Assembly (NCBI GenBank): GCA_004431415.1
Contig: QPMI01000542.1
Location: 310,001-374,000 of the forward strand
DNA: 64,000 nucleotides
Origin: Cyanophora paradoxa CCMP329
Taxonomy: Eukaryota > Plantae > Glaucophyta
Direction: 5' to 3'
Below, piece after piece: positions 9,287-59,600 of the stretch. Every line of letters starts with the position of its first letter. The stretch's first letter is position 1. The position numbers were made by a program, and so were the translations under genes. The notes under the pieces are model-generated. The model saw only the letters and a program-made list of their open reading frames with translations, had not been told where the DNA came from and did no database searches.

Positions 9287-9352
9287 GCATTCGCAGCCAT
9301 GGCCATTTTCTACATTCGCAGCCATGGCCGTTTCCTCCATTTCCGCAGCCAT
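9287..9352. repeat. About 25-bp tandem repeat, 3 units (CATTCGCAGCCATGGCC core); duplicated at about 22657-22721
   Basis: Direct reading. Confidence 0.75.
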
Positions 9353-22295: not shown

Positions 22296-22329
22296 GCCGG
22301 CGCTAGAGAAGGAGCTCGGAGATCTCTAG
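22294..22329 (+). pseudogene. Last 36 nt of the FNT coding sequence, carried by the 13.4-kb duplication
   Basis: Identical to 8925-8960. Confidence 0.7.
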
Positions 22330-36162: not shown

Positions 36163-37756
36163 GAGCCCGGGGATATCGATCCGCGAGCCGCTGAGCTGGG
36201 GTCCTGCAGCTGGGGACCCGCCCGAGATCTAGAGATTCTAGCCTATAGCTAGCAGCTGCAGACCGTACGCGTCGGACCACGCGCGCGCTGCGCATGCGGG
36301 CCTGCGCATGCGGCACGTGCATGCGCACGCGTACGCGTATATGCGTATACGTACGTACGAGGGCGCGTGTATACAGGGCCCACGTGCACGCGGGCCGCGG
36401 CTCGGGGGCCCGGCCGGCGCGGGGCGGGCCCGAGGGGGGGGGGTACTGCCGTACCGGCCCCACTCGTCGCGTCGACTCGCCGCGCGGAAAGGCGCGGTGC
36501 GCCGGTTGGCACAAGCGATTCGACGCGCCGGCGTCGATGTCTCCGCGGCGAGTCCGCGCAGAGTCCGCGGAGCTTCATGTGTTTTGATTCTTTTGAAAGG
36601 TTTTTCAATCTGAAGAATTAAAAAAAGACAAAGGAATCATTGAAAGGTAACTTCGGGGTAACTTCCGAAAAAAGTGTTGCCGCAGGCTGGCCCGCACTGC
36701 CCCGCAGTGCGATCGCCGGTACCGCCAGGCGCCGCGAGCCTCGCGATCGGAGGCCGGGGCCGCCGGGCGGCGGGCGCCGGCGGCGCGGCCAGCGCCGCCG
36801 CGCGCCGCGCGGCCCGCGCCCGAGCGCCGCGGCGCCCGGCCGCCGCCAGCTGCAGCCCGGCGCCGCGCCGCCGGCGCCCGCCGCGCTCCCGAGTCCCGAG
36901 TCCTGATCGCGACTCGCCGACAGTCGGCGAGTCCCGAGTCCCGGAGTCCCGAGTCTCCCGACCGTCGGACTCCCGACTCCCGACTCCGAGTCCCGAGTCC
37001 CGACTCCCGAGTCCCGACTCCCGAGTCCGAGTCCCGACTCGGCGACTCCCGAGCCTCGGAGTCCCGACTCCCGACTCCCGACTCCCGGAGTCCGGCGAGT
37101 CCCGACTTCCGCGCCCGAGTCGGCCCGACTCGGCGAGTCCGACTTCGACCCGGGCCCTGATCGGAGGCGCCGTGCCGACTCACAGGATCCGGACTCCGGA
37201 TCCGGAGTCGGCTCATCAGCCTGGCAGACTCCTCGGCTCTGCTGCGCTCTACTAGGCTACTCTGGCTACTACTACTAGGCTGCTCTGCTGCTGCCAGCAT
37301 CCTGCTGGTCCCTGGAGGCTGGAGCCTGGGACTCCCTGCAGCGGCTGGTCCGTGGCGACTCCGAGCAGCTGCAGGCTGTACTGCAGGCTGCAGCAGGCGT
37401 CTGCAGCTGCCCTGGGCGACACTGTGACAGCTGGTAGGATCCGGAGGCGCGAGTCGGCGCATGCACTGCAGCAGGCATCGGCAGCTGCCCTGGGCCTGTT
37501 CCTAGGCCTGGGCCGCCGCCTGGCCCAGCAGCTGCAGACTGCAGTCACTGAGTGTTTCGAGTCAACTTTCGACTGTCTGTGGAGCTCCTGCAGCTGGAGA
37601 TCTAGACGCGAACATCTATATATATAGGTCTGCAGTACTAGTTAGCTAGCCATAGATCTATAGCTATAGCTAGGCCAGCAGCTTCGAATTCGCAGCATCC
37701 ATATGCATGCGCAAATGTGCAGCCTTGAATGCAGCTACGCATGCATATGCATGCAT

Positions 37757-40700
37757 ATGGCGCCGGCCTGCAGCCGCAGCTGCCCCGCGGCGGGCGGGCA
37801 GAGTCCCGCGGCCGCGCGCGCCTGTGCACGCGAAGGCAAGGGCCCCGCGGCCGGCGCCGGCACTGGCGCCAGTCGCAGGTCGCCTCGCGACCGGCGAGAT
37901 CTAGATCTGGAGCTCGACCGCCGGCAGCGGCCGTCGGGGGCGGCCGCCGTAGGTCTCGGCGCATGCGCGCTGCTGGCCCTCCAGCTCGGGCTGCTGACCG
38001 TGGCGCTCCTGCCTGCGGCTTCGGCAATATCCATCAACGCCTCGTCAATCGTGCTGGCCCCGCCTTCCCGGCCGCCCACTGGCTTTGAGACCGCGGAAAC
38101 GTACTACGCCTCTGTTCAGGTACGCAATTGCAATTTGGCAAATGCTGTCCCATTGTCATTTAAATTTGCGAATAAGTCCGATACACGTGCCGGTACTTTA
38201 AGCACAATTTTGGTTCGCGCTCATCTTACATAAGACTTAATTGCATCTCCCCACACTATATATAGCTATTTTCAGGCCGGGAGTGTGCACGTGGACCGAA
38301 CCCTTAGTCACACACGCGGCTAATGACGCCGTCGCAGCGCGTGTACGCCGCTTCGACGGACCCCACAACGAAGCTCGTCTTCGGCCGCAAGAGTCCGTCT
38401 GGGCCGCCGGCCGCCGCCCGCGCCCTAGGCCTCCTCCGGCTTCGAGCTGATCATGAGCCACCACCGGTACCGGCGCCGTTGCGCAGGCGAGCTGTGGCTG
38501 GTGGTCGACGTCGATGACCCTCCCGGGATCGATGAGGGCGAGTTCTCCTGTCAGGCCTCCCGCCTCCACACCTGCAGCGTCGACGAGGGTGCGAAACAAT
38601 AAATTCCGCCTTTCTTATGGCTGACCAAGACTTTCCCATGGGCCACCCTTTCCGTGGCACAGCGGCCATGCTGGCCCAGCCCGGCTGCAGCCCTTACATC
38701 GTCGTGAGCGCTCCGAGCACCAACGTCACCTTCCGCGTCCCCCACGTGCCCCGGTATCCCGAATCCCATCCCGAAACCATCGTCTGCTTCGAATTCATTG
38801 TTATATTTTTATAAAGAACTCCAGCTTCAAGCTATTTTTTATAAGACTCTTGTTTGACGCTTGACATTTACACGCGGCGCGGCAGGGCGCAGACGCCGTG
38901 GGCGTCCCACCACGCGACCTCGCGCCTCTACTTCCGCCACGTCGTCAACGACGAGGACCCCGTCCTCGAGCCCCTCCGCGCCCCGATCGTGTCAGCGGCC
39001 TTCAGCTTCCAATTTAAATTCGTCTCTTCGTGTGATTCGGAGCGTGCAGGAACCTCGCAAACTGCAACTACATCACGACAGCTTTCGGGATACTGGAGGT
39101 GCGATGCTCCGATCCGTTTCTTCTAAGAGTCTTAAGCTCGAGCTCGAACCAACTCGTTTTCGCTGATCGCAAATCCCGCTTTTCGAAATCGGCAGTACAT
39201 CACGCTCGACAACGCGACGCACGCGCCCAGCGGGTACTTCGAGGTCGAGCCCGACCCTCCAACCCACTCAATGCAGACCCCGTCGTCGACACGGTGCGCC
39301 ATTCAGTCCTTTTGAGTCCAGCAATATGTCTTATTCCGCTTTGCTTGCAGTCGAAGCGCATCAAGCTCGACCCGGAGCTAGAGCCCGTGTCTCTGCAGCT
39401 GGTCCATGTCGATGTTAAATCAAACGTCTGCCGCTTCTGCGCTGATTCCGGTCTCATCCTGCAGATCGGGGCTGAGCCTGGCTCGACCCTTTCCGTCAAT
39501 GACGTCATGTGGGTGGCGATCACTTTCGACGGGTCATCGTGCGCCCGAAATTGAACCGCGACTCTGTCTTCCCGGACACGTAAAATTTCCTCTCGAAATA
39601 ATCCTAATCATAACCCTGCACACCACAGGACGACCCTCTTCCGCCGAACTGTTCCATTGCTGTCAACCTGTGCGCTGCCGCATGCGCATATGCATGCTCA
39701 GCGTTTGAATACCATTATATTCAAACTAATCTCTTGTTCGAGCTTCGAGCTGCTGCCGACGTTGTTTTCACTTCTGCTTAAGCTTATTCAACCCCCCCGG
39801 CTCGACAGCAATTTCCGGACCATTGAAGACTGGCAGGCAGTCTCGCGCGATGATGCGCTCGCGGGAATGGGCGGTGCGGGCCACGCCACAATCAGCGATC
39901 ACACACTCGTCTACCGTCACACGTACGCGTGCAGCTTGATGCTTGTTTCGCATGCGCATGGGTCTCCGAGCGCTAAACGATCACGGCATGCGCAGGGTTC
40001 TGAAGGGTGAGAACTCGAGGGCGATTGCGGTGAGGAGCCCGTAACACAGGGCCTCATCATCTCGAACGATTGCTCCTCGAAGTGCGGCTTGCGCCGAGGC
40101 GGAATGCGTGCTCCCTCTCAGAGTCTCTGCAGGGGATGCGATTCGCGTCCGCGAAAGCAGGAGCAAAGCGGACCGTGAGCCTCGCAGGTGCATTCGAGAG
40201 AAGGGCGCCGGGCGCGTGTCTAAGCTGGGCTCAAATCTCCCTGCAGACCTCGTCTTCTCGCCATGCAAGCGGTCCTTGACCTCGCCGAGCGGCTGCGAGC
40301 CCGGAGTGACCTCCGTCGGCGTTGACACCCTCCGTGCGCCAACGCCCCGACCGGGATCTCAATTGAAAGCCACATGAGTAGCTCCAGAAATTAATCTGAG
40401 CGGTGTTTTGCGGCAGCCCGCGGATGGTCGGCGTCAGCACACGCAAGGACCCGAAGTCGGTGTTCTACAGCGGCGACGCTATCGATATTGGTAGGCATAT
40501 CACTAATCGTATAACAGCTGGCTTCTGTCACTGACCACATTTATGTGTGCGCAGCGGTTCTTTTCACCAAGCCCGTGATTTTTGTGGTTTCTCCCGACAA
40601 TGGCGTCAATCCCTTCGGTCTGCCTGCGTTGCCCTGCGTAGAAATATCCGAACAAGCGTTTGTACATGGGTCGCTCAACTGGCTCTCCGGATCCTTCGCG

Positions 40701-42580
40701 CAGCCGTGGGCGGCCTTACCTCGACCTGAACTCCGGCGGCGAGGCCTCTTTCGTCGGATACTTCCCGAACGACAATTCCACCCTTCTCTTCCGCTACCTA
40801 GTTGCGGTTCGTCGCTCAGGATCGCACAGCTCAGTTGCCGGAATGCTTCTGCTAAATCTGCAGCCGCTGATCCTCGGAGAGCAGTCTGGCGAGACGACGG
40901 ACGGGAAGCCCCTTGAGGTCGTCAAGTTCGAAACAAACGGCGCCGTCGTTACGTCGGCCAACGGCCTGGACAGTGCGCCGTGCAATCGCAAAGGCTTTTG
41001 ACCTCGCTCAAGAAAGCTTATCGCATTCTTTCGCGTCTCAGTTGTCGCGAACGAAGAGGTGCTGAAGGCGGTTAAGGATGCGAACAGCGGCCTGTCAGCC
41101 GCTGGCCTCATTGTTCAGCGCTCCAGCACTGCGCGCCGGGTACGATCTGTACATGGTTTAAAAACGCATTTCTCATTTGAGAGGCAACGATCGATTTTGC
41201 GAGCGCAGCTCGAGGTATTCGGCGCTGTCGGCGGGGGCCGTGATGTCTTCTCGCTCCACTCGGTCATTTACATTATTCTTACCTTCGACGACGTGGTGCG
41301 GCGCGTTTGTGATGAATTGCTGCACAGCTGCAGGCGGGCTCACAGTGTTTTCTCGTAATTTGCACAGGTCTTCCAGCGCCCGAAGGACAACAACTCCGCC
41401 GCCCTCGACGCCTGCCGGCCGACGCTGCGCACTAACTTCGGAACTTTGGAGTTCCTCCCGCGCGAGGAGTTCAACGCTATTGTCCAGGTGCTATTTTGCG
41501 CTTGACGTCGCCTGAACGCGTACGTGCCTGAACGCTTCGCAGGGCAACGTGGCAGGCCGCCAGCAGATCGTATTTCGCCGTTCAGTGGAAGTGCGCGAAA
41601 TCATATGCGACCGGACGCCGTGTTCGTGCATACGAAGCCGCCTCTGACAGCGACGCAGCCCGAGACGGCTGTACGAGAGCATCGAGATCGAGAAGCCGTA
41701 CGACACTGCGGTCAACGCCACCGGCTGCAGCCCGCCGCGAGTGCGCGCGCGTGGCTCTGCATGCGCATTTTAATTTGTGAAACCGATCTGCTTTCGACTC
41801 TGTTAATTCTCCAATGCAATTCTCCTGTTAATATATTCTGTTTCAATGTTTCTTGAACAGCGGCATGGTTGTACCGGTGGCGCTCTCGAAGATCGCGGGC
41901 TTCTACCCGCTGGAGAATCAAAACAACCCCTTTGAGGCATGGGTGAAGGTGCGTGAGCAAAGCGCTCGCATATCTGAATATCTGCATATCTGCATCTGCT
42001 GTCTAATTTCCAAGCTAGATCGATACCTTTTCGGCCAGCATCGTCGGAGTTGCCGCAAGGTAATTGGTCTTGTTTAATGATTATTCGATCCCCCAGCTGC
42101 AGTCTATCGGTTTTGAGATTCTTCCAGTTCTCGAACATCACTGTGGGCCTCGCTCCCGGTCGCATAGGGTACGTATACGTTCTCGAGACGAGCTCGCGAG
42201 CATCGCCACCCGTGCATCCGACAACACCGCGCGCGCCGCAGGACGTCGATATCCTCGTCACATTTTCGAAACCGGTGGACTACCAAATCCTCGTGCGACC
42301 ACAAACTTGCAGCCAAAATCGATACCGAATTCGTCTTCGTGGCTCACGCGCACGCGGCCGCGGCGCGCGCGCAGCTGGACCCGCTGAACGTGCAGGACGC
42401 GGCGAAGACGCGGGAGGCACGCCTGTACGGCACGCCGCGCATCGCCCTCAACACGCTCGCCTACGCGTACCTCCTCGGCTACGCCAACCCGGACATTCCG
42501 GCCAGCTTGATCCATTACGCACTCCAAGAGCAGTGTTCGTCATGAACATGATGATCATGAACATGATTTGCATGACATGA
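37757..42580 (+). pseudogene. 3'-truncated copy 4 of the channel gene
   Basis: Same sequence and junction as copy 1. The stop is at 42545 as written, or 42580 if the junction C-run is CCC. Confidence 0.85.
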
Positions 42581-43725
42581 CATCGGCGGTTTGCACTCAA
42601 CCTGCGCATTTTACATTTTACGAAATACCATAAATATCCAGAAGGTGTAGATGGGGTTTTCGAGGGTGGCGGAGACGATGGGCGTGTTTCTGCGGCCAGC
42701 CAATTAAAGCCTGAACCGGTATTCAAGATTCGCAGTAACGGGGGCCCATATTGCTCCCAGCATCATTCCGCCCCACCCATTCGCAGGCAGCTTCCACCAC
42801 TCCGAATATAAGTCATTCAGATGCTATTAAGAGATACTGCATGCTTGGAAGCCCGCTCGGAGTTCGAACCACGAGCCCGCACCCTCGAGCCCTTGGCCCC
42901 GCGTGCTCAGTTTGCAGACGAGCTGGCCTCGTTCATATCGATGCTATAAGTTATATATAATTAGCTGCAGGAAGGCACACTACCTACAACTAAAACTGTA
43001 ATATTGATAAATTCGGACGTCGATACATACGCCATACATGTCCAGCCGAAATTCTAGCGGAGCACAGCGAACGATTGGCGCGAAACTGAGCACGTCAGAA
43101 GTGCAGTTTAGAGCAATCTAGAGCAGGGAAATTTTTGGTTTCGCGCCAATGTCTCGCCGTGCAGAAGTTGGCCTCGGGGTCGCTGCGCCCCGGCCCCTCT
43201 TCAGCCTCGACAGCGCAAGGCAGCTCAAGGCCCGCCCAGGCCCCCCGCTCCCCCAACTGCCCTTCCCGGACTCGAACGCTGGAGCAATAAGACGCCGGCC
43301 GGCGCGCTGCTAGCTCGGCTAGCTCGCCGCGAAACTGGCCTTTTCCTCGTCGCCTTTGTATGGCCATACATCTAGGAAAATTTCGTACCGGATCCGCACG
43401 AAACTGAGCCTTATTCTAGCATCAAGATGCATATTAGCTAGTATTAAACGCTTCAGTTTCTCGCCAATCGCTTCCCATTATTTTATCCAGCCAAATCGAC
43501 CAGATACTCTAGATCGATATCTCCGCGAAGTCTCCAGCCAAGGCGCGGAGACTTGCTGGAGAGTGGCTCTATACAAGTCTCCAAAGAGTCTCCAAGCGGA
43601 TATTAGCTGGAGACTACAGCTCAGGAAATACTCCATCTAGTCTCCTGAAGCCCCAAAATGCGTTAGTCTCCAGCTAGTCTCAGTCTATTCTCCAGCTGAT
43701 CTCCCGGACCCCCCCTCCACTAGTG
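42540..43725. mobile_element. CACTA right-arm fragment with right TIR
   Basis: Matches 14030-15230 and ends ...CCACTAGTG|GAG. Confidence 0.9.
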
Positions 43726-45312
43726 GAGCCCGGGGATATCGATCCGCGAGCCGCTGAGCTGGGTCCTGCAGCTGGGGACCCGCCCGAGATCTAGAGATTC
43801 TAGCCTATAGCTAGCAGCTGCAGACCGTACGCGTCGGACCACGCGCGCGCTGCGCATGCGGGCCTGCGCATGCGGCACGTGCATGCGCACGCGTACGCGT
43901 ATATGCGTATACGTACGTACGAGGCGCGTGTATACAGGGCCCACGTGCACGCGGGCCGCGGCTCGGGGCCCGGCCGGCGCGGGGCGGCCCGAGGGGGGGG
44001 TACTGCCGTACCGGCCCCACTCGTCGCGTCGACTCGCCGCGCGGAAAGGCGCGGTGCGCCGGTTGGCACAAGCGATTCGACGCGCCGGCGTCGATGTCTC
44101 CGCGGCGAGTCCGCGCAGAGTCCGCGGAGCTTCATGTGTTTTGATTCTTTGAAAGGTTTTTCAATCTGAAGAATTAAAAAAAGACAAAGGAATCATTGAA
44201 AGGTAACTTCGGGGTAACTTCCGAAAAAAGTGTTGCCGCAGGCTGGCCCGCACTGCCCGCAGTGCGATCGCCGGTACCGCCAGGCGCCGCGAGCCTCGCG
44301 ATCGGAGGCCGGGCCGCCGGGCGGCGGCGCCGGCGGCGCGGCCAGCGCCGCCGCGCGGCCGCGCGGCCCGCGCCCGAGCGCCGCGGCGCCCGGCCGCCGC
44401 CAGCTGCAGCCCGGCGCCGCGCCGCCGGCGCCCGCCGCGCTCCCGAGTCCCGAGTCCTGATCGCGACTCGCCGACAGTCGGCGAGTCCCGAGTCCCGGAG
44501 TCCCGAGTCTCCCGACCGTCGGACTCCCGACTCCCGACTCCCGAGTCCCGAGTCCCGACTCCGAGTCCCGACTCCCGAGTCCCGAGTCCCGACTCGGCGA
44601 CTCCCGAGCCTCGGAGTCCCGACTCCCGACTCCCGACTCCCGGAGTCCGGCGAGTCCCGACTTCCGCGCCCGAGTCGGCCGACTCGGCGAGTCCGACTTC
44701 GACCCGGGCCCTGATCGGAGGCGCCGTGCCGACTCACAGGGATCCGGACTCCGGATCCGGAGTCGGCTCATCAGCCTGGCAGACTCCTCGGCTCTGCTGC
44801 GCTCTACTAGGCTACTCTGGCTACTACTACTAGGCTGCTCTGCTGCTGCCAGCATCCTGCTGGTCCCTGGGAGCTGGGAGCCTGGGACTCCCTGCAGCGG
44901 CTGGTCCGTGGCGACTCCGAGCAGCTGCAGGCTGTACTGCAGGCTGCAGCAGGCGTCTGCAGCTGCCCTGGGCGACACTGTGACAGCTGGTAGGATCCGG
45001 AGGCGCGAGTCGGCGCATGCACTGCAGCAGGCATCGGCAGCTGCCCTGGCCTGTTCCTAGGCCTGGGCCGCCGCCTGGCCCAGCAGCTGCAGACTGCAGT
45101 CACTGAGTGTTTCGAGTCAACTTTCGACTGTCTGTGGAGCTCCTGCAGCTGGAGATCTAGACGCGAACATCTATATATATAGGTCTGCAGTACTAGTTAG
45201 CTAGCCATAGATCTATAGCTATAGCTAGGCCCAGCAGCTTCGAATTCGCAGCATCCATATGCATGCGCAAATGTGCAGCCTTGAATGCAGCTACGCATGC
45301 ATATGCATGCAT

Positions 45313-48300
45313 ATGGCGCCGGCCTGCAGCCGCAGCTGCCCGCGCGGGCGGGCAGAGTCCCGCGGCCGCGCGCGCCTGTGCACGCGAAGGCAAGGGCCCC
45401 GCGGCCGGCGCCGGCACTGGCGCCAGTCGCAGGTCGCCTCGCGACCGGCGAGATCTAGATCTGGAGCTCGACCGCCGGCAGCGGCCGTCGGGGGCGGCCG
45501 CCGTAGGTCTCGGCGCATGCGCGCTGCTGGCCCTCCAGCTCGGGCTGCTGACCGTGGCGCTCCTGCCTGCGGCTTCGGCAATATCCATCAACGCCTCGTC
45601 AATCGTGCTGGCCCCGCCTTCCCGGCCGCCCACTGGCTTTGAGACCGCGGAAACGTACTACGCCTCTGTTCAGGTACGCAATTGCAATTTGGCAAATGCT
45701 GTCCCATTGTCATTTAAATTTGCGAATAAGTCCGATACACGTGCCGGTACTTTAAGCACAATTTTGGTTCGCGCTCATCTTACATAAGACTTAATTGCAT
45801 CTCCCCACACTATATATAGCTATTTTCAGGCCGGGAGTGTGCACGTGGACCGAACCCTTAGTCACACACGCGGCTAATGACGCCGTCGCAGCGCGTGTAC
45901 GCCGCTTCGACGGACCCCACAACGAAGCTCGTCTTCGGCCGCAAGAGTCCGTCTGGGCCGCCGGGCCGCCGCCCGCGCCCTAGGCCTCCCTCCGGCTTCG
46001 AGCTGATCATGAGCCACCACCGGTACCGGCGCCGTTGCGCAGGCGAGCTGTGGCTGGTGGTCGACGTCGATGACCCTCCCGGGATCGATGAGGGCGAGTT
46101 CTCCTGTCAGGCCTCCCGCCTCCACACCTGCAGCGTCGACGAGGGTGCGAAACAATAAATTCCGCCTTTCTTATGGCTGACCAAGACTTTCCCATGGGCC
46201 ACCCTTTCCGTGGCACAGCGGCCATGCTGGCCCAGCCCGGCTGCAGCCCTTACATCGTCGTGAGCGCTCCGAGCACCAACGTCACCTTCCGCGTCCCCCA
46301 CGTGCCCCGGTATCCCGAATCCCATCCCGAAACCATCGTCTGCTTCGAATTCATTGTTATATTTTTATAAAGAACTCCAGCTTCAAGCTATTTTTATAAG
46401 ACTCTTGTTGACGCTTGACATTTACACGCGGCGCGGCAGGGCGCAGACGCCGTGGGCGTCCCACCACGCGACCTCGCGCCTCTACTTCCGCCACGTCGTC
46501 AACGACGAGGACCCGTCCTCGAGCCCCTCCGCGCCCCGATCGTGTCAGCGGCCTTCAGCTTCCAATTTAAATTCGTCTCTTCGTGTGATTCGGAGCGTGC
46601 AGGAACCTCGCAAACTGCAACTACATCACGACAGCTTTCGGGATACTGGAGGTGCGATGCTCCGATCCGTTTCTTCTAAGAGTCTTAAGCTCGAGCTCGA
46701 ACCAACTCGTTTTCGCTGATCGCAAATCCCGCTTTTCGAAATCGGCAGTACATCACGCTCGACAACGCGACGCACGCGCCCAGCGGGTACTTCGAGGTCG
46801 AGCCCGACCCTCCAACCCACTCAATGCAGACCCCGTCGTCGACACGGTGCGCCATTCAGTCCTTTTGAGTCCAGCAATATGTCTTATTCCGCTTTGCTTG
46901 CAGTCGAAGCGCATCAAGCTCGACCCGGAGCTAGAGCCCGTGTCTCTGCAGCTGGTCCATGTCGATGTTAAATCAAACGTCTGCCGCTTCTGCGCTGATT
47001 CCGGTCTCATCCTGCAGATCGGGGCTGAGCCTGGCTCGACCCTTTCCGTCAATGACGTCATGTGGGTGGCGATCACTTTCGACGGGTCATCGTGCGCCCG
47101 AAATTGAACCGCGACTCTGTCTTCCCGGACACGTAAAATTTCCTCTCGAAATAATCCTAATCATAACCCCTGCACACCACAGGACGACCCTCTTCCGCCG
47201 AACTGTTCCATTGCTGTCAACCTGTGCGCTGCCGCATGCGCATATGCATGCTCAGCCGTTTGAATACCATTATATTCAAACTAATCTCTTGTTCGAGCTT
47301 CGAGCTGCTGCCGACGTTGTTTTCACTTCTGCTTAAGCTTATTCAACCCCCCCGGCTCGACAGCAATTTCCGGACCATTGAAGACTGGCAGGCAGTCTCG
47401 CGCGATGATGCGCTCGCGGGAATGGGCGGTGCGGGCCACGCCACAATCAGCGATCACACACTCGTCTACCGTCACACGTACGCGTGCAGCTTGATGCTTG
47501 TTTCGCATGCGCATGGGTCTCCGAGCGCTAAACGATCACGGCATGCGCAGGGTTCTGAAGGGTGAGAACTCGAGGGCGATTGCGGTGAGGAGCCCCGTAA
47601 CACAGGGCCTCATCATCTCGAACGATTGCTCCTCGAAGTGCGGCTTGCGCCGAGGCGGAATGCGTGCTCCCTCTCAGAGTCTCTGCAGGGGGATGCGATT
47701 CGCGTCCGCGAAAGCAGGAGCAAAGCGGACCGTGAGCCTCGCAGGTGCATTCGAGAGAAGGGGCGCCGGGCGCGTGTCTAAGCTGGGCTCAAATCTCCCT
47801 GCAGACCTCGTCTTCTCGCCATGCAAGCGGTCCTTGACCTCGCCGAGCGGCTGCGAGCCCGGAGTGACCTCCGTCGGCGTTGACACCCTCCGTGCGCCAA
47901 CGCCCCGACCGGGATCTCAATTGAAAGCCACATGAGTAGCTCCAGAAATTAATCTGAGCGGTGTTTTGCGGCAGCCCCGCGGATGGTCGGCGTCAGCACA
48001 CGCAAGGACCCGAAGTCGGTGTTCTACAGCGGCGACGCTATCGATATTGGTAGGCATATCACTAATCGTATAACAGCTGGCTTCTGTCACTGACCACATT
48101 TATGTGTGCGCAGCGGTTCTTTTCACCAAGCCCGTGATTTTTGTGGTTTCTCCCGACAATGGCGTCAATCCCTTCGGTCTGCCTGCGTTGCCCTGCGTAG
48201 AAATATCCGAACAAGCGTTTGTACATGGGTCGCTCAACTGGCTCTCCGGATCCTTCGCGCAGCCGTGGGGCGGCCTTACCTCGACCTGAACTCCGGCGGC

Positions 48301-51300
48301 GAGGCCTCTTTCGTCGGATACTTCCCGAACGACAATTCCACCTTCTCTTCCGCTACCTAGTTGCGGTTCGTCGCTCAGGATCGCACAGCTCAGTTGCCGG
48401 AATGCTTCTGCTAAATCTGCAGCCGCTGATCCTCGGAGAGCAGTCTGGCGAGACGACGGACGGGAAGCCCTTGAGGTCGTCAAGTTCGAAACAAACGGCG
48501 CCGTCGTTACGTCGGCCAACGGCCTGGACAGTGCGCCGTGCAATCGCAAAGGCTTTTGACCTCGCTCAAGAAAGCTTATCGCATTCTTTCGCGTCTCAGT
48601 TGTCGCGAACGAAGAGGTGCTGAAGGCGGTTAAGGATGCGAACAGCGGCCTGTCAGCCGCTGGCCTCATTGTTCAGCGCTCCAGCACTGCGCGCCGGGTA
48701 CGATCTGTACATGGTTTAAAAACGCATTTCTCATTTGAGAGGCAACGATCGATTTTGCGAGCGCAGCTCGAGGTATTCGGCGCTGTCGGCGGGGGCCGTG
48801 ATGTCTTCTCGCTCCACTCGGTCATTTACATTATTCTTACCTTCGACGACGTGGTGCGGCGCGTTTGTGATGAATTGCTGCACAGCTGCAGGCGGGCTCA
48901 CAGTGTTTTCTCGTAATTTGCACAGGTCTTCCAGCGCCCGAAGGACAACAACTCCGCCGCCCTCGACGCCTGCCGGCCGACGCTGCGCACTAACTTCGGA
49001 ACTTTGGAGTTCCTCCCGCGCGAGGAGTTCAACGCTATTGTCCAGGTGCTATTTTGCGCTTGACGTCGCCTGAACGCGTACGTGCCTGAACGCTTCGCAG
49101 GGCAACGTGGCAGGCCGCCAGCAGATCGTATTTCGCCGTTCAGTGGAAGTGCGCGAAATCATATGCGACCGGACGCCGTGTTCGTGCATACGAAGCCGCC
49201 TCTGACAGCGACGCAGCCCGAGGACGGGCTGTACGAGAGCATCGAGATCGAGAAGCCGTACGACACTGCGGTCAACGCCACCGGCTGCAGCCCCGCCGCG
49301 AGTGCGCGCGCGTGGCTCTGCATGCGCATTTTAATTTGTGAAACCGATCTGCTTTCGACTCTGTTAATTCTCCAATGCAATTCTCCTGTTAATATATTCT
49401 GTTTCAATGTTTCTTGAACAGCGGGCATGGTTGTACCGGTGGCGCTCTCGAAGATCGCGGGCTTCTACCCGCTGGAGAATCAAAACAACCCCTTTGAGGC
49501 ATGGGTGAAGGTGCGTGAGCAAAGCGCTCGCATATCTGAATATCTGCATATCTGCATCTGCTGTCTAATTTCCAAGCTAGATCGATACCTTTTCGGCCAG
49601 CATCGTCGGAGTTGCCGCAAAGGTAATTGGTCTTGTTTAATGATTATTCGATCCCCAGCTGCAGTCTATCGGTTTTGAGATTCTTCCAGTTCTCGAACAT
49701 CACTGTGGGCCTCGCTCCCGGTCGCATAGGGGTACGTATACGTTCTCGAGACGAGCTCGCGAGCATCGCCACCCGTGCATCCGACAACACCGCGCGCGCC
49801 GCAGGACGTCGATATCCTCGTCACATTTTCGAAACCGGTGGACTACCAAATCCTCGTGCGACCACAAACTTGCAGCCAAAATCGATACCGAATTCGTCTT
49901 CGTGGCTCACGCGCACGCGGCCGCGGCGCGCGCGCAGCTGGACCCGCTGAACGTGCAGGACGCGGCGAAGACGCGGGAGGCACGCCTGTACGGCACGCCG
50001 CGCATCGCCCTCAACACGCTCGCCTACGCGTACCTCCTCGGCTACGCCAACCCGGACACCAAGGTGGGATGCATTGTTTCAAACTGCATTCCCTCTTATT
50101 TGAGCTGATCATGATGGGCGGCGCCTCAATTAGACGACGCTGGTATTCCGGTACTCGGTGCAGGTGGGCGAGGGGACGCCCGAGGGCGAGTACCTGGACG
50201 TCCTCAGCGTCGACGCGTTTGATTCGTACGGCGGCATCCTCCGCACCGCCGGCAACGCCCTCGACGTGCGAAACAGCCGGACAGCGTGCACAACCTCTCG
50301 GATTGCTGCTGATCGCGGCTGGTCTGCAGGTCATTCTGGGCTTGCCCGCGCCGGGAGCGGAGCACGGCCTCTCGGATTCGCGGGTAACGGTCGAGAAGAC
50401 GGGAAGGCCGGCGATGCCTTTCGGCTACGACCCGAGCCAGCCGCCAACCGAGGAACCCGTCGCTTTGATTGTTGACAAGTCGTCGAATTCTGGCGGCCGG
50501 CAACGAACGCGGCACGTGCTCGCGTCCTCACTGGACGTCAGCCCACAGCCGGTGCGGGTCGAGGTCACCGTTCAGATCAATTCGGTCATCGATGTCTCGG
50601 TGCGCGACGCGCCTCCAGACGCAAGAGGTCGATATCGCTTCACGCATTAATTTCGCGGGCGGTGACCGGTCTTCGTAGACGAAGGACCAGTCGATGAAGG
50701 TTGACCTGACGCTGTTGCAGGAGTGGTACGCTCTGCCGCCTTCAGCGCTACGGCGATATTTGCGACGACTGAATTCAAATCATTTCGAATTCGCTAGGTT
50801 TGATTCGCGCTTCAAATACCCGAACCTGGCCCCCATCGCCGAAAATGACACTTCGATCCTGAACGCGATTTGGAGCCCGCGCCTGACTTTTGTCAACGTC
50901 CTGGTGCGGCGCAGCGCCCACGGCAAGCTAAACACGTCCTGATCGTACTCCGCAGAGCAAGCCGGACGGGTTCGACGGCAAGGTCATCCGGTTCAATGTG
51001 CGAGACCACCGCTGCCAAAAACACACTCAATTGCAAGTGTCGATCGCTTACGACACAGTCTCTCGCGCAGAACGGCACCGTCAGGCTGTATCAGCGGTTC
51101 ATCCAGGACTTCGCGGGTGCGACCGCTTGCGGCGACCGTACCCGCGCGCGGCGCTGAATGCAGATTTTGCGCAGTGGACATCAATGTCAAGGACTTTCCG
51201 TTCGACATTCAGGTGCGCTCTGGAACGCGCGGGGGAAGCACGTTCGTTTCGCCCCTCCTAACAAATTGCGCAGACGCTTTCTATCCAGGTACCAGCGTCT

Positions 51301-53350
51301 GTCGCGGTTAAACTCAGCTTCGGATATAGTTCGCTTATTCAGAAACGGCGTGCAGCTTCGGAGCAACAGCTTCGACGGAAGCCAGCTGACATTCGCGCCC
51401 ATAACTGGAGCGAAACTCAACGGGCAGGAGGCCAACATGCGCGGCATTGTCGACCCGTCGTGGTGCGTCACGGCACGCTCGCTTCGGTAATGTACGCGCA
51501 AATAGAAAGCCTAATGCACACGCTTCGCGGCCGCTCGCCACCCCAGGACCTACGAGTCGTACAAGCAAGAGGTGGAGACAACGGACACTGGGATCAACGC
51601 AGGCTACGACATCCTAACCACGAGCTTCCGTGCTCGGGTCCGTGCAAATCCTGCGGATTATTCGGTTCAAAGAAGCTAATTCAAAGCGTCCTTGCAGCGC
51701 ATCCGAACGTACAACGTGATCAATTTGCTGGTGCCTCTTCTGCTCATCAGCATCTCGGTCATCTTCTCGCTCTTCCAGTGCGTTTTCAGCGCTTCAGAAG
51801 CTCGGCGCTCCAGAACAAATAATCGCGACCCTCTTTTCCCCTTCAGGCCCGTGGAGAGCGAGAACCGGACGGTGGCGTGCGAGACGGCGCTGCTCGGAAC
51901 GCTCGGCTTCTCCTTCGTCCTCGCGGACCTCTCGCCGCCCGTCTCCTACATGACCAAGATGGGCGCCTTCACCTTCCAGGTGCAGAATCGCGATGAACAA
52001 TTATAATTGAGAATGAAGAGCTGTGTATGAGTTTCCAAACGACAGCAGCGCAAAAGACAGTTTCCAAATACAAAAATATAGCTACGTTGCTACATGCTTT
52101 CGCGCCTGACTCCGGTCGCAGGCGTACGCGTTCAGCATCGTGGGGCTCGCCGTCAACGTCGCCTTTGGGCACCTCGTGTGCGCGCCGCCGTCTGCTTCGC
52201 GGAGACGCGCCGCTCGTTCCGCGGCTGACGGTGGACGGGGCAGCTGGGTCGTCAACGAGCTGCGCCGCATGGACGACGGCGGCAAGGGCGACGACCGCGA
52301 GCGGATCTTCGAGCACATCTACGAGGCCGTCCTCAAGGTGCGATCCGATGGTCTCTGCTTCTTATTGCGTCCGCTGGCGCGCTCGCGAGTTCACCGCCCC
52401 TCGCGCAGTTCAAGGGCTCGCAGCCGCAGGCCGCCCCGGCCTCCGCAGTGGACGCGAAGGCCGCCAGCGCGTCTCCCCGCGGGCAGACGCTGGCGCCCAT
52501 CGCACCCCAGCCGAACGTGCAGCTCCTGCAGACGGCGGGCCGCGTGCCGGTGGCGCCCAGCGCGGGGGCCCTGGGCTTCCCGACGCCGACCGAGGCTTCG
52601 ATCCCGAACTCAACGGCGATCAATATGCACGCGGCCGACGCCGAGCACGATGCGGCGGCGCGGATCATGACGCACAGGACGCCGGGGACGGGCTCGACGG
52701 CCCTCACCCGCTTCTTCGCCCGGAGCGGCTCGATCCGCCTCCAGCAGATCGCCGCGTCGGCCGAGGTGCCGGCCGTTCAGCTTACACTGCCTCGCGACAC
52801 TCAGTCCGCCCTGCGCTGCAGGTGGCGCCGGCGCCGGGGCTCGGCGACATCGTCTTCAAGGACGGCCTCCTCACCACCCGCGCCACTGAGGTCCGCGAGC
52901 CCGCCGCCCAATCGCTCTAGATACTGTTATTTCGCTCAACGTTGGGCGCCGCGATGATGTGCAGGAGGAGGCCCGGAATCAGCCCCCGCCGGCCCCCGAC
53001 CCCAAGCGCCTCGCGGGGTTCTTCGTGCCCCCTGTGCGCCCCCTCCGCACCGACTTGCACCAATCGCTAACTCGGCGGACTGTCTCCTCGCGCAGGTTCT
53101 GCCGCGCCGGTACCACGTCTTCGACATCTACGGCATTCGCTTCGGCGAGCTCCGCGTCCAGAACCGCGAGGTGGCCATACATGCAGAGCCTAAATATTCT
53201 AGGGCCGCCCCTGCAAAGCTTCTCACGCTCGCGCCTGCTCCGCGGCAGGTGTACATCGAGCGGCTGCGGGAAGTGAACGCGTGGGTGCGGGCCGCGTTCA
53301 TCGTGGCCTTCGTCGCCAGCACCGCGTGCATCTTCACCGTCGCCCCGTAG
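45313..53350 (+). CDS. Full-length Cys-less (Pro-loop) pentameric ligand-gated ion channel subunit with a very long N-terminal ectodomain; roughly 45-50 short exons (hand estimate)
   Basis: Manual GT-AG splicing gives these pLGIC hallmarks in order: GYDPSQPP..PVRVEVTVQINSVIDVS-TKDQSMKVDLTLLQEWFDSRF, IWSPRLTFVN, NGTVRLYQR, Pro-loop VDINVKDFPFDIQTL, M1 RIRTYNVINLLVPLLLISISVIFSLF, M2 ESENRTVACETALLGTLGFSFVLADLSPPVSYMT, M3 MGAFTFQAYAFSIVGLAVNVAF, a long loop, and M4 REVNAWVRAAFIVAFVASTACIFTVAP-TAG (53348-53350). Exon 1 has a signal-like segment LGACALLALQLGLLTVALLPAASA. The start ATG is inferred from copies 2-4, where it is in frame; single-base G/C-run indels in this copy are probably consensus errors. 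Confidence 0.9.
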
Positions 53351-53627
53351 CCAGCGGGCGATTGAAACCCTTTTTACTTTAGGATGTATCGATTCGTGAC
53401 TTTTAGCTTTAAGAAGCAAGCTTCGGTACTGCTGCTTTATTCAACCCCCACGCTCTTTCCTGCATAGGCCCCCGCAGACCTTCCTGAACGGAGCGTACTT
53501 TATTGCTCTTTTCCGATAGCATTGATTCGCATGGATTGCTTGCCAAACGGGGCGTAATGTACAATTGAAATCAGTCAGGACACACGCGCTGCCGCGCGCA
53601 AACGAGCCCTAATGTAGACAGGCTTTT

Positions 53628-56600
53628 CTAATACGAGTAGGCTTTTTCTTTGCCCTTGGCGCTCGCGATCGTGTTCGGGGCTGTGGTTGGGGCCGCCGTA
53701 GTTCCGGAGCCAGCTGCAGGGCTGCCGCTGGACCCGGCAGTAGGGGTCGCGGGAGTCTGTGAGCAGCCACTCCATCTGCTGCCAGAAGCGTAAGGATTCA
53801 ATTTAAAATCAAACGAAACAATGCCATCTTCACCGGTGCAGGTCCGCGAGAGTGATGCACGCGCTCGAGCTCGTCGCCGCCGTCGCGCTCATCGCGGCGC
53901 GCTTCGCCTTCGCGACCGCCCAGATGTCTTCCTCGACGGTCCCCGCCATGAGAAAATGCTGCGAAGCCCGACCATAAATTCAAAATCAGATATAGACTTC
54001 CATCTGCAGAGCATTTAATTTGCGTCTAGATCTAGACTTCCATCCGCAAAGCATATAATTTCTATCCAGACTTCCGTCTGCAGAGCATTTCAAATGGATC
54101 TCACGTGAATTGTCATTGGCTTCGTCTGTCCCATGCGGATGATGCGGCCGGTGGCTTGGTCGGCTGCGAAATGCACCGGCACCCTTCACGATCAGCATCG
54201 ATTCATGCATGTTTCTAGAAGCACATCACACCTTCCGCAAAGTTCAGACTTGGCTCGGCGAAAATGATGTGATTGGCCTGCTCGCAAAGCTGGACTGATA
54301 ACGAACAATTCGCAATGGATAGAGAAACCCAAGACGAACGATAGTCAGCGTGAGCCCGCACGAGCCGACTCGGTAGAGCATGAGGCAGGCGGGGAGCTCG
54401 TTGAAGTCATCCGCCGTCTCCGCCTGGAACTCGGCGATGCGGTTGGCGCGCTGCTGGCGGGAGCCCCGGAACGCTTCCACGCATCTGTGTGCATTCAGAC
54501 CCGCCAAGATACGACAAGGGCATACGCTGACCGAATAGGAGGGTTATGCGATTTGCAGGCGTCAGACAAGAGCTCCAACACTTCCGGATCCTGAGCAAGC
54601 ATTATTATTGCTATCGGATCCGGAGTCGGCCTTTCGCTTAATAAATTTTAAACGTGAGCCCATAGGTTTGCGCACCCGTGCAAAAACGACACACTTCTCA
54701 TTGTTACACTTGATTTCCTGGATCTTGTTGCATATGGCAAGCACCTAGGAGGCGAATTGGCTCATATATACTAACAAATATAATATTCTGATGGGATCAT
54801 GATCGATATCACCTTCGAGCCGTATCGGGCGCGCTGGGGATCCAAGATGGCAGAGTCGCCTCGGATGGAAGGTCGAGACGCCAGCATGCTTTCCTCGAGC
54901 GCGTCGCGGTCGGCGTCGCCGTCGAGACGTTGGATGAAATAGCGTTCCACTTCGTTTCCTTCGGATTCCTGTTTGGAAGCAGTGCAGAATATTAATGAAG
55001 CTCGAGCTTGGAAGAGCAATATTAATATTGCAAGGAGGCGGTTTCGCACCACCTGGCAGAAAACGCGATCGTCTTCCGATGAAGAGGATTCGGAAGATCC
55101 AGCGGGCGTGAGCTCGAGCTTCCACTCAATGGGACATCGGACGCCGCGCCCAGTTTCGCTGGCGAATTTGATGTGACATTCCTGGCACAGCACATGGGAG
55201 CACTTGAGCACGAAGCATTCCCGGCCAGCTTGATCCATTCCGCAATACGAGCACTTTCGCTGCGCCGGAACGAGTCAGAGTATCGGCGAGGACCTAGAGA
55301 TGCAAGGCCTGCCTCGAAGTTTCCCTCCTGATCCTGATTAACTTGCGCCTCGAGATCTTGGACTCGAGTCTTGAAGCACCCGTGGACGTGCTCCCGTTCC
55401 TCAAGCAGCTCGTCATTGTATTGGACCTTCCTGCCGCGCGCGTGCAAAAGAGCTCGGGGTTTGATTGCGCCTGGCCATGGGATCACGTGCGTATGTACAG
55501 CGGAAAAGTTTTGTTTACCAGCGACGCTGAGCGAGCTCACGGCTGACGTTAAAAATCTTCATCACGACCCTGGTGCATGCCAACGTTAACTCAACGATAT
55601 CGATGAGGTGAAATTGCGATAACAAATAAAACGATGTCAAATGGCGGTCAGCTATCGGTTCGAATTCATTCACGCACCGAGCGCGCGCTCGCATCCCTTC
55701 GTTGGGCGATTTCGAGCAGATGTGCGCGTATAGGCCGAGCCATCTCTGCACTCTCTGAATTCGAATGCGTCTGGCGAACAAAGGATCCGGAGGGCCCGCG
55801 GGCTTGCCGCAATATTGATGTGAGACGATGGACCTCCGGTGGCCTTGTCGAGATTAGTCAGTTGCGAGTCTGCAGAGCCGAAGAACCGGGTCGCAAGCCT
55901 GCGCAGGCGAAATTAAAACATTAATTACAAAGACCCGCATCAAGTGCTGAAAAAAAGATCAAAACGGCGGACTTGGACAGCATTCGCTTCACAAAGTCGG
56001 GATAGTGCTGTTGCACAGGTCTCCCGAGGGCCGCCTGCACGTCCGGATCCAGACAGGCAAAATACCAAGTCGACAACCCGACCAGCTCGCGGATCCGCCC
56101 AAAGTCATTGTCAGTGGCCAGGTATTCCTGCGCCGGCCATCGTCATGAAATCGGCTTCAGAACGCAGCATGTTTTGGGCTGGAACCTGCGCAGATGGGGA
56201 ATTGTCGATGGTGATCGCTTTGACGTTTTTCATCAACCGTTCCCATTCATCAAACTGTATTGTCAGAAGCGCAATTATAAGCCGAATATTGATCGCCGAA
56301 AGATAATCCAGCTGTACCTCTCTGTCCCTGCGCATCCAGGTGGCGGTGACCATGGTGACAGCCTCGTGGAGAGCATAGTGAAGTTGGGAAATGATCTGCT
56401 TGTCGATTAATATTATGGGAAAATGAAGCTAAATGCATATTGTCATTTCACCGTAATGTACTCGTCTTTTGGAACCCCGATTTGGGAAAAGTCTAGCTGG
56501 ACGATGCAGCGTTTGGACTTAGATTTGCCGATGCCAACGGTACATGCGGAGTCGACGTCCAAGCTTTTAAGGTAGTCCCAGCCCCGCCCTGGCCTGCGGG

Positions 56601-59600
56601 AAAACGAAGTCTGCAAGAGGATATTTGAGATATCTGCCCATATATAATCACCAGGAAGATATTGCTGAAAATAACTTTTCAATAGCAAACGCGGCCTTGC
56701 TCAGCCATTCCGACACATCGTTCCACCTTGAAGAAAGGTTTCCGTGTCCCAGCAATGCAGCGACCGCTGTTTCGCGCACCTACAGCTTATTTAATAGTAG
56801 ATCTCAAAGGATCTTTGAAGGAATAAATAAAACACTCACAATCGCAGTGTCGGCGAGAACCTGTAAGGCCAGCTCCTTGAGCGCAGAGGGTCCTACACCC
56901 CCCTTACATCGACGTCGAATCGTCTGAAGTCGTTCCAGTGCCGTTGCCAGGACGCCCCCTGGCATTGGCGCGATTTTACCCGTGTTGTCGACGAGGATAC
57001 GGTTGCTGCATACGTCCCGGGCTTGCGAGCTGGTCAGTTCCGCGACTTCTTGAAAAAGAGCGCCAGGCTCATGATCAGGGATGTTGACTGCCGCGCCAGC
57101 AGGCGCGGTATTGATTCCCATGAGCAGTAGAAAGCCGTACATAGAAACCAGCTGCCATGAAAGTCACCACAATAAGAGCAGTTTAGGCTTCGATATATAT
57201 GTACCTTTGCTCTGTGTAGCGGGGATTGGTTCGGTTGAACCAGCTGCAGCTCCTCGCTGATGAGATTCAAGCAGTTGCGCAGCTGCGTGATGACGGCGTG
57301 CTCGGACTCGCGAAGCTGTTGAAGCCGCATATCAGCGATGGCTTGCTCGGTCCGCTCTTCCAATAGCTTCACGTGCTTCGCGCATTCTGTCTCCCTAGCG
57401 CGTTCCAAAAGCAGCGTCGCGAACTCGTGCGACGTGATGGCTTTTGAGCCGGCGCTAGCTGATGATTTCCGGTCTTGCTGCTGGGCCGCCGTCGTGTTGC
57501 ACGATGCCAAGAGCTTCTCGAACGCGCGCTGAGCCGATGGGCATGCCTTGAGAAGGTCCTCGACGAAGCCTTGATCGATATCAGTTTTCTGTGCATGGAT
57601 CCGGAATGTTGCTCACATCTGAACGATATCGTACCGCCGGCGCACGGGCAGGGGAGCACCCGCTTTTGAAAGAGTTTCACTTGCTCATCAGATAGCTGTG
57701 AATCCGCGATCTGCCGGGCAAATGTAAATTTCGACGCTCAGCTGCAGATACAAAGCCAACACTGAGGACAGGTGCGAGGGAAGCAATCAGCACCTGCTCA
57801 TCCAGGCGGAGTTTTTCCGATGCAATTTGGTCTGCAATCTGCGCCCACAAGTTTGAGCGCGATTCGCATTTGCTCACATTTTTAAAATCAATTGCGCGCC
57901 AAATTTTGCAGTCGCTTTTTGTGAAACTCGCATCTGTCCCTCTCCATCGCAGATATATTCACCTGCAAAATTCGCTAATAAGCCATGGGCCATATCATAA
58001 TCAATCCGAAATTGTGCACGTCGTCGGTCGACATCGCGCAATATTAATCTACACGTGGCTAATAATGGGTTCGGGCACATGCACAGCGCACACCGTGTAT
58101 TCGAGATACTTTTTTGGAGGAAGATCGAGCTCGTTCCGGACGTGCCCCAAAGATTCGCGGTGTGCAAAAGACGAAAAGAACCTGTGTGTTGTAATTATAT
58201 AAAGCACGAATTAAAATCAAGGTAATCGCAAGGTGATTGCAATTGAATCGAATGTCGAAGTACCAAGCCAGGTCGTCCATAGCTGATCTCATGATCGTGA
58301 AGCGTGAAGCATCGATATCGTCATTGGTACACCGGCTCAGATAGATATCTGAGAACCTTAGGAAAAGATGATTAGATCCACGGGGGGGAAACATGGAAAC
58401 GAAGATGAGGGGGTAGGGGACACTTATATCAAGCAGGAATATGCGTACCAAGAACCGACGCCGTAGGGATTGTGCTTGAGGAAAGCCAGTATCCCCCCAA
58501 GGTCTTTCAGGCCGTTTTTGATTGGCGTTCCTGTGACCGCCCAGCTGCGCGAAAAGAAGTGAATACGCGAAGGCACTCACGGTCGCGGACCCGAGCTCAT
58601 TCACGCGCACCGGTTCTCTGCCTCAATCGAGTCGCATTGCTTGACGAGTTTGCTTTGCCTGTTGCCTGCTTGTTGAGCCTCGTCAAGAATAATGCGCCAC
58701 CACCTGCGAGCTCAAACATGTAATTTGCATTACCCATGCACTACTCCTAGGCTCATTCACTGCTCGTACACCGCATGTAAAACCCGGATACCTGCACTGG
58801 GCCAGCGCTTTGAAGATCACTTCCAAAGCTTTCCTGTTCTCTCTCGCATCGAATGGGACAAGTACAATCTCCGCCCGGCACAGACGCTGATTTTCGATGT
58901 TATCGTGGCTATATATTGAGCGCAACAAGTGCGCACTTGTAACGATTTCACGTCGGCCTCGCGCTCCAAGAGAATCGTGCGATCAGCCAGCCAGGGAGAC
59001 AGCTTTTGGATCTACGTTTACGCACGCAACACACGTACAGCTGTCGAGCAAGCAGAAACATACTAATATTTAGATTTGGATGACGCGCGCACCTCCCGAT
59101 GCCATTGCTCAAAAATCAGCGGAGGAACGATAATGAGCGTGTTGGCCAGCGCCTTAGTGGTCGCAACGGTGCGTGCTGCGGTCCGAGTTCGGGGGCGCGG
59201 GTTCGAAAGAATCAGAGCAATGCAGTCCAGCTGCGTTTACGAAGAAAGCTCAAACGTCAGGCACAAAAGCCCAGAAATCCCTAAGAGAGAACCAATTCAC
59301 CGTCTTCCCCAGACCCTGCGCATTGCAGCGGCCATTGGTCAGTGCTAGTTTACTTTGCAGCGACTAAGGCCTGTGGCGGGCGCGATAGAAATTATCCTGA
59401 TCGCGGACCATTTCATCGCACAGGAGTCCACCGCGAACGGCGAAACGGGGAGGCTTGACCGGGGTCGTTGTCGCTTCGCCCGTGCATAGGTTGACGTAGA
59501 AGGGCTTTCCTCTGAACGCTGGCTCGTCTTCCGGGACCTGCCCCTGGCCAGCGATTGCTGCTTTTCCTGGAATCTGCGCTGCTCTAAGGAGCCGCTCTCG

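Follow-up and report, generated by a model that had tools for sequence, protein, structure and literature searches.

A probable Cys-less pentameric ligand-gated channel subunit with an N-terminal chain of bacterial-type Ig-like domains in the glaucophyte Cyanophora paradoxa

Reviews of the pLGIC family (pentameric ligand-gated ion channels) describe extra N-terminal domains only for prokaryotic members, such domains not having been seen in eukaryotic homologs (PMC9897478, PMC12664993). This raises the question of how a locus of the glaucophyte alga Cyanophora paradoxa is to be read, in which a pLGIC appears to be preceded by a long, repetitive, β-rich ectodomain. The locus lies at 45313–53350 on the plus strand of the 64,000-nucleotide stretch of DNA analysed here, which is referred to as the window. 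It is probably a single, very intron-rich gene for a Cys-less pLGIC subunit that is extended by a chain of immunoglobulin (Ig)-like domains, with a 5′ part that has recently been tandem-duplicated and with seven frameshifts that are errors of the assembly.

The plus strand of 45313–53350 corresponds to one gene, the published C. paradoxa model tig00021070_g17905 (P0006 in the following). Spliced alignment was carried out with three guide proteins, namely P0006 and two paralogs, P0001 and P0002, and the same GT-AG junctions were recovered with all three. The spliced aligner places P0006 (1053 amino acids, aa) on 45877–53347 in 35 exons with 1043 of its 1053 residues identical; the published model skips exons around the frameshift sites. 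After seven single-base restorations, taken from the majority of five copies of the duplicated part, the gene comprises 47 exons with a median of 87 nt and encodes 1503 aa in an open reading frame (ORF) of 4512 nt, which starts with the ATG at 45313 and ends with the stop codon at 53348–53350. The apparently continuous run of exons described by the first-pass annotation exists in this corrected form, whereas in the raw window it is broken by the seven false frameshifts. The 46 introns have a median length of 70 nt, and 45 of them are of the GT-AG type. The remaining GC-AG intron (47719/47783) was placed by the P0002-guided alignment only; the published model uses 47744/47805 instead, by which the frame is lost on the corrected sequence. 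The DNA of the window is GC-rich (52–68%), and the GC content at third codon positions (GC3) of the gene is host-like with 77%. Database searches and folds reported below were performed with single exons and with the published models P0001, P0002 and P0006, the corrected joined protein being assembled and checked by script only.

The Ig-like and the channel parts meet within one exon (50330–50599, plus strand, lying in the open frame 50333–50647), which carries the last strand of the final Ig-like unit u5, a linker of 42 aa and strand β1 of the ligand-binding domain (LBD). A profile built exclusively from prokaryotic Ig-like repeats reaches 50378, and the Pfam LBD starts at residue 533 of P0006, equivalent to 50546. 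As one exon carries both the Ig end and strand β1 of the LBD, the fusion is independent of any intron call. This exon bears out the earlier proposal of a single gene, in a microbial eukaryote with many introns, that unites a β-rich ectodomain of bacterial-type Ig-like character with a pLGIC. Two genes, one for a secreted Ig-repeat protein and one for a conventional short pLGIC, might in principle have been joined wrongly by the reader or by the gene predictor, since upstream Ig copies without a channel do exist and are annotated as separate short genes, and since the join is read from genomic sequence and homology alone. Such a misjoin is, however, most improbable in view of the uninterrupted exon 50330–50599; moreover, no start codon with a signal sequence is found between the two parts, and two paralogs conserve the continuous frame across the junction.

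These paralogs were found with the neighbouring exon 50679–50939, which has two matches (1019 and 1238 aa) among 1.84 billion representative proteins. Both are C. paradoxa proteins of EukProt, tig00021070_g17907 (P0001) and tig00021312_g20089 (P0002), and a search of a larger collection with P0001 added tig00021070_g17905 (P0006). P0001 aligns to the locus at 94% identity, P0002, which is located on another contig, at 65%. Both paralogs keep the domain order and the GT-AG junctions, i.e. the whole architecture is conserved, and both read ..GYANP(D/T)(T/S)KTTLVFRYSV.. across the continuation from the Ig chain to the channel. Between the locus and P0002 the N-terminal part is 64% and the LBD 68% identical. 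That the N-terminal part is conserved like the LBD argues for one protein selected along its whole length.

The LBD (aa 977–1160) is encoded by about nine exons at 50543–51700 (plus strand). The Pfam family Neur_chan_LBD (PF02931, cut-off 26 bits) scores 60.5–70.2 bits, with 60.5 bits on P0006 and 69–70 bits on the paralogs. In a profile search of the PDB with the three channel parts, 306 solved pLGIC sequences were matched, the best being ELIC (E-values of 1e-22 to 3e-24), followed by GlyR (1e-17), nAChR alpha-4 and GLIC (1e-15). The alignments cover strand β1 to helix M3 and include one to a solved chimera through M1–M3. The β6–β7 loop reads ..AVDINVKDFPFDIQTL.. and harbors the Cys-less Pro-loop ..AVDINVKDFPFDIQ.. 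in exon 51175–51212; its DFPFD motif, with the conserved Pro, is invariant in the three paralogs P0001, P0002 and P0006. In metazoan-type Cys-loop receptors this loop is flanked by a disulfide-forming pair of cysteines (C-x13-C). In the three C. paradoxa proteins the equivalent positions are occupied by Val or Ala and by Leu, with no Cys at either flank, and the protein therefore groups with the Cys-less pLGICs. The earlier description of a complete Cys-less pLGIC is sustained.

The LBD is followed by helices M1–M3 at 51707–52256 (plus strand), which were located by the PDB alignment and are 83% identical to P0002 and 100% to P0001. A PDB phmmer search with the open M1–M2 segment gave no match. 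The paralog alignment gives M2 as E(-2') N R(0') ... T6' L9' ... D20', and hydrophobic peaks of the corrected model at aa 1166–1184, 1231–1252 and 1485–1503 coincide with M1, M3 and M4; altogether a Pro in M1, the Leu at 9' of M2 and four transmembrane helices are found after the LBD. Acidic rings in M2 are an established signature of cation selectivity. With acidic rings at -2' and 20', Leu at 9' and no Pro-Ala-Arg motif, the pore is predicted to be cation-selective. An intracellular M3–M4 loop of about 227 aa, partly of low complexity, occupies 52257–53278 (plus strand; alignment columns 300–500) and is 56% identical to P0002. Long M3–M4 loops are typical of eukaryotic pLGICs (PMC12664993). 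M4 and the stop codon (53285–53350, plus strand) complete the protein, the last exon (53249–53347) being recovered with all three guides. In the ESM Atlas, the clusters closest to the channel core are pLGICs of haptophytes, diatoms, chlorophytes and rotifers with 317–492 aa, taken here as a lead only.

The pre-LBD part, estimated earlier at about 800 aa, is longer and amounts to about 975 aa including the leader, with an extension proper of about 880 residues. It consists of the leader and a hydrophobic segment, some 230 residues without fold assignment, and four clear units of about 140–160 aa. Leader (66 aa) and hydrophobic segment (aa 67–95; 45509–45595) are located at 45313–45595 (plus strand) within exon 1 (45313–45766). 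The hydrophobic segment, with a Kyte-Doolittle maximum of 2.27 at aa 67–85 of the corrected model, would be either a signal peptide or a signal anchor. Exon 1 joins the published first exon in frame via the GT-AG junction 45766|45892; judged from the sequence, this join and the start codon carry the greatest uncertainty in the model. The subsequent N-terminal region (aa 96–329; 45596–46933, plus strand) contains at most one degenerate half-unit (aa 246–299; independent E-value of 0.077 with the unit profile) and has no match in Pfam or NCBIfam. From 46440 onward its coding capacity is conserved with P0002.

Unit boundaries were drawn with an algal unit profile that was built from the paralog units and serves for boundaries only. 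Unit u2 (aa 330–487; 46934–47887, plus strand) scores 57.7 bits on this profile, displays the LxFRY-type strand and has weak partial matches with the prokaryote-only profile. Unit u3 (aa 488–630; 47888–48694, plus strand) is nearest to prokaryotic repeats, with 40.0 bits on the prokaryote-only hidden Markov model (HMM) at aa 494–600. The divergent unit u4 (aa 631–785; 48695–49613, plus strand) reaches 129 bits on the algal profile and shows the VxF and xVFRx strands; it is only about 20% identical to the other units and has no independent prokaryotic match. The last unit u5 (aa 786–934; 49614–50416, plus strand) scores 30.4 bits on the prokaryote-only HMM at aa 836–922 and ends within the fusion exon. 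It crosses the duplication breakpoint at 50058 discussed below, and each of the two paralog guides reproduces its exon joins ..NPDTK|GT (50063) and AG|..LVFRYSV (50134). The LxFRY-type strand recurs five times in P0002 with a spacing of 141–164 aa, and the units align pairwise at 19–33% identity. A BLASTP self-comparison of the N-terminal part gave no significant internal repeat, i.e. the units are related at the profile level only.

The peptides by which the first-pass annotation had characterized these units were traced on the plus strand, and nine of ten are present where it had placed them. For the last unit these are DVDILVTFSKPVDY (49805–49846), YGTPRIALNT (49989–50018), AYAYLLG (50022–50042), VGEGTPEGEYLDVLSVDAF (50164–50220), GGILRTAGNALD (50230–50265) and LGLPAPGAEHGLS (50336–50374), for the upstream units GSTLSVNDVMWVAITFDG (47033–47086), GRPYLDLNSGGEASFVGY (48268–48321) and FSLHSVIYIILTFDDV (48806–48853). 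The tenth, NSTLLFR, is uninterrupted in the four upstream copies alone, being split here by a single-nucleotide deletion at 48340.

Resemblance of the units to repeats of large bacterial surface proteins, suggested in the first-pass annotation, was recovered by sequence and profile comparison and, with moderate support, by comparison of a fold model. A tblastn search of plasmids with u3 led to an ORF of 3344 aa on a plasmid of Azospirillum lipoferum (38% identity over 77 aa), which carries Big_13, Big_6, Big_5, PATR and DUF4347. The matched Azospirillum repeats score 21.9–26.3 bits with Big_5, followed by Big_12. Comparison of the algal units with five Azospirillum repeats by hhalign yields a probability of 91.8% and an E-value of 7e-7. 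When one genome of each prokaryotic species was scanned, 19 loci with repeats 29–36% identical to u3 emerged, among them loci from Asgard archaea, actinomycetes, Verrucomicrobia and a cyanobacterium of the genus Rivularia; by Pfam, the repeats show a weak affiliation with Big_12/Big_5. An HMM from the 19 repeats alone gives 40 bits on u3 and 30 bits on u5, and u5 had no part in the selection of the repeats. On this sequence evidence we conclude that u3 and u5 are homologous to prokaryotic Ig-like repeats and that u2 and u4 are divergent copies linked to them through the algal units. The chain would comprise a minimum of four divergent Ig-like domains, and possibly five or six, all of the prokaryotic Big_5/Big_12-like type. 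The gathering scores of Big_5 (PF13205) and Big_12 (PF19078) are not reached, and no algal unit has a Pfam hit at E-values up to 1, scores of 21.9–26.3 bits being attained by the prokaryotic intermediates only. Likewise, no match was obtained for ten single exons in Pfam, for the N-terminal parts in NCBIfam, or for the unit alignment in a PDB profile search; the lack of Pfam and PDB matches of single exons is attributed to their shortness. As a separate observation, four of the 19 loci (L002, L004, L006 and L014) stem from metagenome-assembled genomes of Asgard archaea (Odin-, Hod- and Promethearchaeia), which is worth recording for a typically bacterial surface repeat.

The AF2 model of u3, computed from an alignment of 23 rows, is an all-β fold of nine strands with a pLDDT of 66 overall and 75–87 in the core. 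A shape search of the Atlas gives TM scores of 0.58–0.66 over 93–110 residues, and the Ig-annotated clusters found in this way carry Big_12, Big_13, Big_6 and Big_5. By VIA-align, Z-scores of 5–6 are obtained to the Ig-like domains of the surface proteins SbsC (5.2), Cwp6, InvD and FdeC, which, being below 8, may also reflect a common arrangement. Foldseek against the PDB detected no significant match for the AF2 unit models, and a first AF2 fold of u5 (8 rows) has a pLDDT of 55.

Since the only detectable relatives of the Ig-like units are found in bacteria and archaea, bacterial ELIC is the best solved match of the channel and all other pLGICs known to bear N-terminal domains are prokaryotic (PMC9897478), the whole fusion might be a recently imported bacterial channel that already bore its N-terminal domain, and would then reveal nothing new on eukaryotic channels. 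This origin is nevertheless regarded as improbable: the gene contains 46 spliceosomal introns, its GC3 of 77% is host-like, the intracellular loop of 227 aa is of the eukaryotic type, three diverged paralogs exist, and the Atlas clusters nearest to the core are, as a lead only, those of haptophytes, diatoms, chlorophytes and rotifers. The Ig module by itself may have been acquired by an ancient transfer.

The 5′ part of the gene is the last of five copies of a tandem array, which extends over 1–50058 on the plus strand and, like the assembly frameshifts, was missed by the first-pass annotation. Each copy comprises the promoter and the first 28 exons (c1, 1–5825; c2, 15754–21583; c3, 29124–34920; c4, 36686–42495; c5, 44242–50058). 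The copies are 99.1–99.7% identical according to self-BLAST, and only c5 continues into the channel, c1–c4 being truncated. Similarity ends at 50058, five nucleotides before the exon end ..NPDTK|GT; beyond the break c1–c4 continue with 44 nt and a 1.23-kb element, where the frame runs into a stop codon after 16–28 codons. It is at this break of c1–c4 that the short published models g17902 and g17904 terminate. Both paralogs read through the continuation from c5 to the channel, which identifies it as the native one.

Apart from this, the array displays nested tandem duplications, namely of a 7.56-kb unit (27404–42495 matches 34965–50058) and of a 13.37-kb unit (8925–22298 matches 22294–35635), both of which carry the promoter and the first 28 exons of the channel gene. 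The 7.56-kb duplication is probably the recent event that captured the 5′ part of the gene and gave rise to the four channel-less copies. The 1.23-kb element is located at 5870–7098, 14029–15260, 27404–28631, 34965–36192 and 42539–43755, with a partial copy at 21627–22298, and precedes every gene copy. Two of its copies flank a 6.9-kb segment (7099–14028) in an arrangement reminiscent of long terminal repeats. Long ORFs of 7099–14028 have no match in Pfam. Direct repeats inside the segment (10638–11139 and 12315–13195, with identities of 96% and 84%) have copies at 24009–24510 and 25688–26568.

The five copies differ by 75 gap columns and by no true substitution. Homopolymers of at least three nucleotides account for 58 of the 75 gap columns versus 15% of all columns, and each copy has private single-nucleotide deletions, 5 to 38 per copy. 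The seven frameshift sites of c5 are located at homopolymers at 45338, 45343, 46511, 46807, 47083, 48340 and 48467. The unique 3.3-kb part of the gene is free of frame breaks. Taken together, the single-nucleotide deletions bear the signature of long-read consensus errors that polishing missed inside the repeat, rather than of mutations. If they were real, the channel-joined copy would be a decaying pseudogene with seven genuine N-terminal frameshifts, and only g17907 and g20089 would be functional. The raw window does require seven single-base restorations for read-through and the published model skips the exons around the frameshifts; yet private deletions in all five copies without any substitution, their accumulation in homopolymers and their absence from the unique part are what unpolished long reads leave behind, so that decay of this copy is judged very unlikely.

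An assembly problem of another kind would be that the array itself is an artefact, in which case the gene would be single-copy in the genome and the truncated copies would not exist. Copies identical except for error-type indels, and nested units of 7.56 and 13.37 kb as a structure that assemblers can get wrong, both speak for it. Every truncated copy, on the other hand, ends at one and the same novel junction (equivalent to 50058), followed by the 44 nt and the 1.23-kb element, and simple collapse or expansion would not create such a junction. A spurious array is therefore considered unlikely, though it deserves to be kept in mind. It would leave the fusion untouched, because the continuation from c5 to the channel matches both paralogs.

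In order to place the putative fusion protein among known channels, it was compared with the systems that are closest to it. Cys-less Pro-loop pLGICs of protists have been described by Jaiteh, Taly and Henin (2016) as core channels only, parts outside the core having been discarded from the alignment and glaucophytes being unmentioned (PMC4795631). The C. paradoxa protein shares with them the FPFD Pro-loop without flanking Cys, the four transmembrane helices and the long M3–M4 loop, but differs by about 880 extra residues, predicted to be extracellular, while the nearest clusters measure 317–492 aa. ELIC (PDB codes 2vl0 and 2yn6), the best solved match from the LBD through M3, is likewise Cys-less and of the cation-channel type; contrary to the C. 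paradoxa protein it is bacterial, comprises only about 320 aa and lacks both an N-terminal domain and an intracellular loop.

Among solved structures, an extra β-rich N-terminal domain on a pLGIC has a single precedent, DeCLIC from Desulfofustis, in which two jelly-roll lobes form an outer domain that packs on the extracellular domain and changes the gating kinetics (PMC9897478, PMC12664993). This small domain is the only one of its kind studied so far (PMC9897478, PMC12664993). Unlike bacterial DeCLIC, the eukaryotic C. paradoxa protein carries a chain of at least four Ig-like units and about 880 aa. Nor is this chain of the DeCLIC type in a comparison made by sequence only: the units match Ig-like repeats, and DeCLIC is not among the best 60 of the 306 PDB sequence matches. 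The closer likeness of the units is to Big_5/Big_12 repeats of giant surface and S-layer proteins (SbsA/SbsC type), with which they share the strand motifs VxFSxPV, GxPxLxLN, TLxFxYxV and GGxIxDxxGN. In contrast to these repeats the algal units fall below the Pfam thresholds, contain long insertions and form part of a eukaryotic membrane channel instead of a secreted adhesin.

Several points weigh against reading the locus as one functional Ig-extended channel gene. Besides the pseudogene status of c5 that genuine deletions would imply, homology and splice rules are the sole basis on which the start codon, exon 1 and a number of short exons were assigned. For units u2 and u4 and for aa 96–329, no independent match was obtained beyond the family. 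The models support the Ig fold only moderately (pLDDT of 66, no significant match by Foldseek in the PDB, VIA Z-scores below 8). In the Pfam check of the C-terminus proposed by the first-pass annotation Neur_chan_LBD is clearly above its cut-off, whereas Neur_chan_memb (PF02932) stays below its own with only 13.6 bits on P0006. Finally, word-based searches of 5.8 billion proteins returned only the three C. paradoxa paralogs, no other protein of similar length sharing words with the family, and no homolog with this architecture was detected outside this species; scanning metagenomes twice with channel alignments gave no relative either.

Translation of 44461–45057, upstream of where the gene starts, yields a low-complexity repeat rich in Ser, Arg and Pro (..PDSRVPSPDSESRLPSPESRL..); this is probably simple sequence without coding function that belongs to the promoter or 5′ region. 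A minus-strand ORF (54771–55238) immediately downstream of the channel gene shows RING-finger matches below the cut-off (zf-RING_5, 19.8 bits) and is probably part of a neighbouring gene, perhaps g17906; apart from these matches, Pfam detects nothing on the long ORFs of 53400–64000.

How such a protein might work can be outlined only in conditional terms. Insertion by the signal sequence would place the Ig chain outside the cell, a location assigned because the chain directly precedes the extracellular LBD and follows the signal or anchor segment. In a pentamer, 20–30 Ig domains would then form a stalk or crown over the ligand-binding ring, and the channel would still be opened by a small ligand acting where the ELIC-like domains of neighbouring subunits meet. 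By analogy with DeCLIC the stalk may act as a binding and/or allosteric accessory module. That the channel is contact-, adhesion- or tether-gated, as suggested at the outset, is pure speculation. In its most elaborate form this idea would have the Ig stalk make the channel gated or tuned by macromolecular or particulate contact, be it with a bacterial surface, the extracellular matrix or another cell, with the four channel-less copies giving rise to stalk-only proteins of about 875 aa, either soluble or anchored in the membrane, that compete for the partner or co-assemble with the channel. We regard this as a long shot; if true, it would represent a receptor/decoy system caught during gene amplification.

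As to novelty, a literature search found no paper on such a eukaryotic channel or on pLGICs in Cyanophora, in agreement with the first-pass view that it is undescribed. The gene models g17905, g17907 and g20089 are, on the other hand, present in the published proteome (EukProt) with a Pfam LBD, albeit unnamed. New for the locus are the tandem duplication with its stalk-only copies and the assembly frameshifts; the sequences themselves are already public. In this respect the locus shows how unpolished tandem repeats in an assembly break gene models.

A eukaryotic channel with a conserved bacterial-type Ig stalk of about 880 residues would overturn the generalisation that extra N-terminal domains are confined to prokaryotic pLGICs. 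Furthermore, it would provide a second, very different system in which to study how accessory extracellular domains couple to gating, with the three paralogs and the stalk-only copies as natural experimental controls. For the organism, it hints at how a wall-less flagellate alga might convert what it recognises in its environment directly into an ion current.

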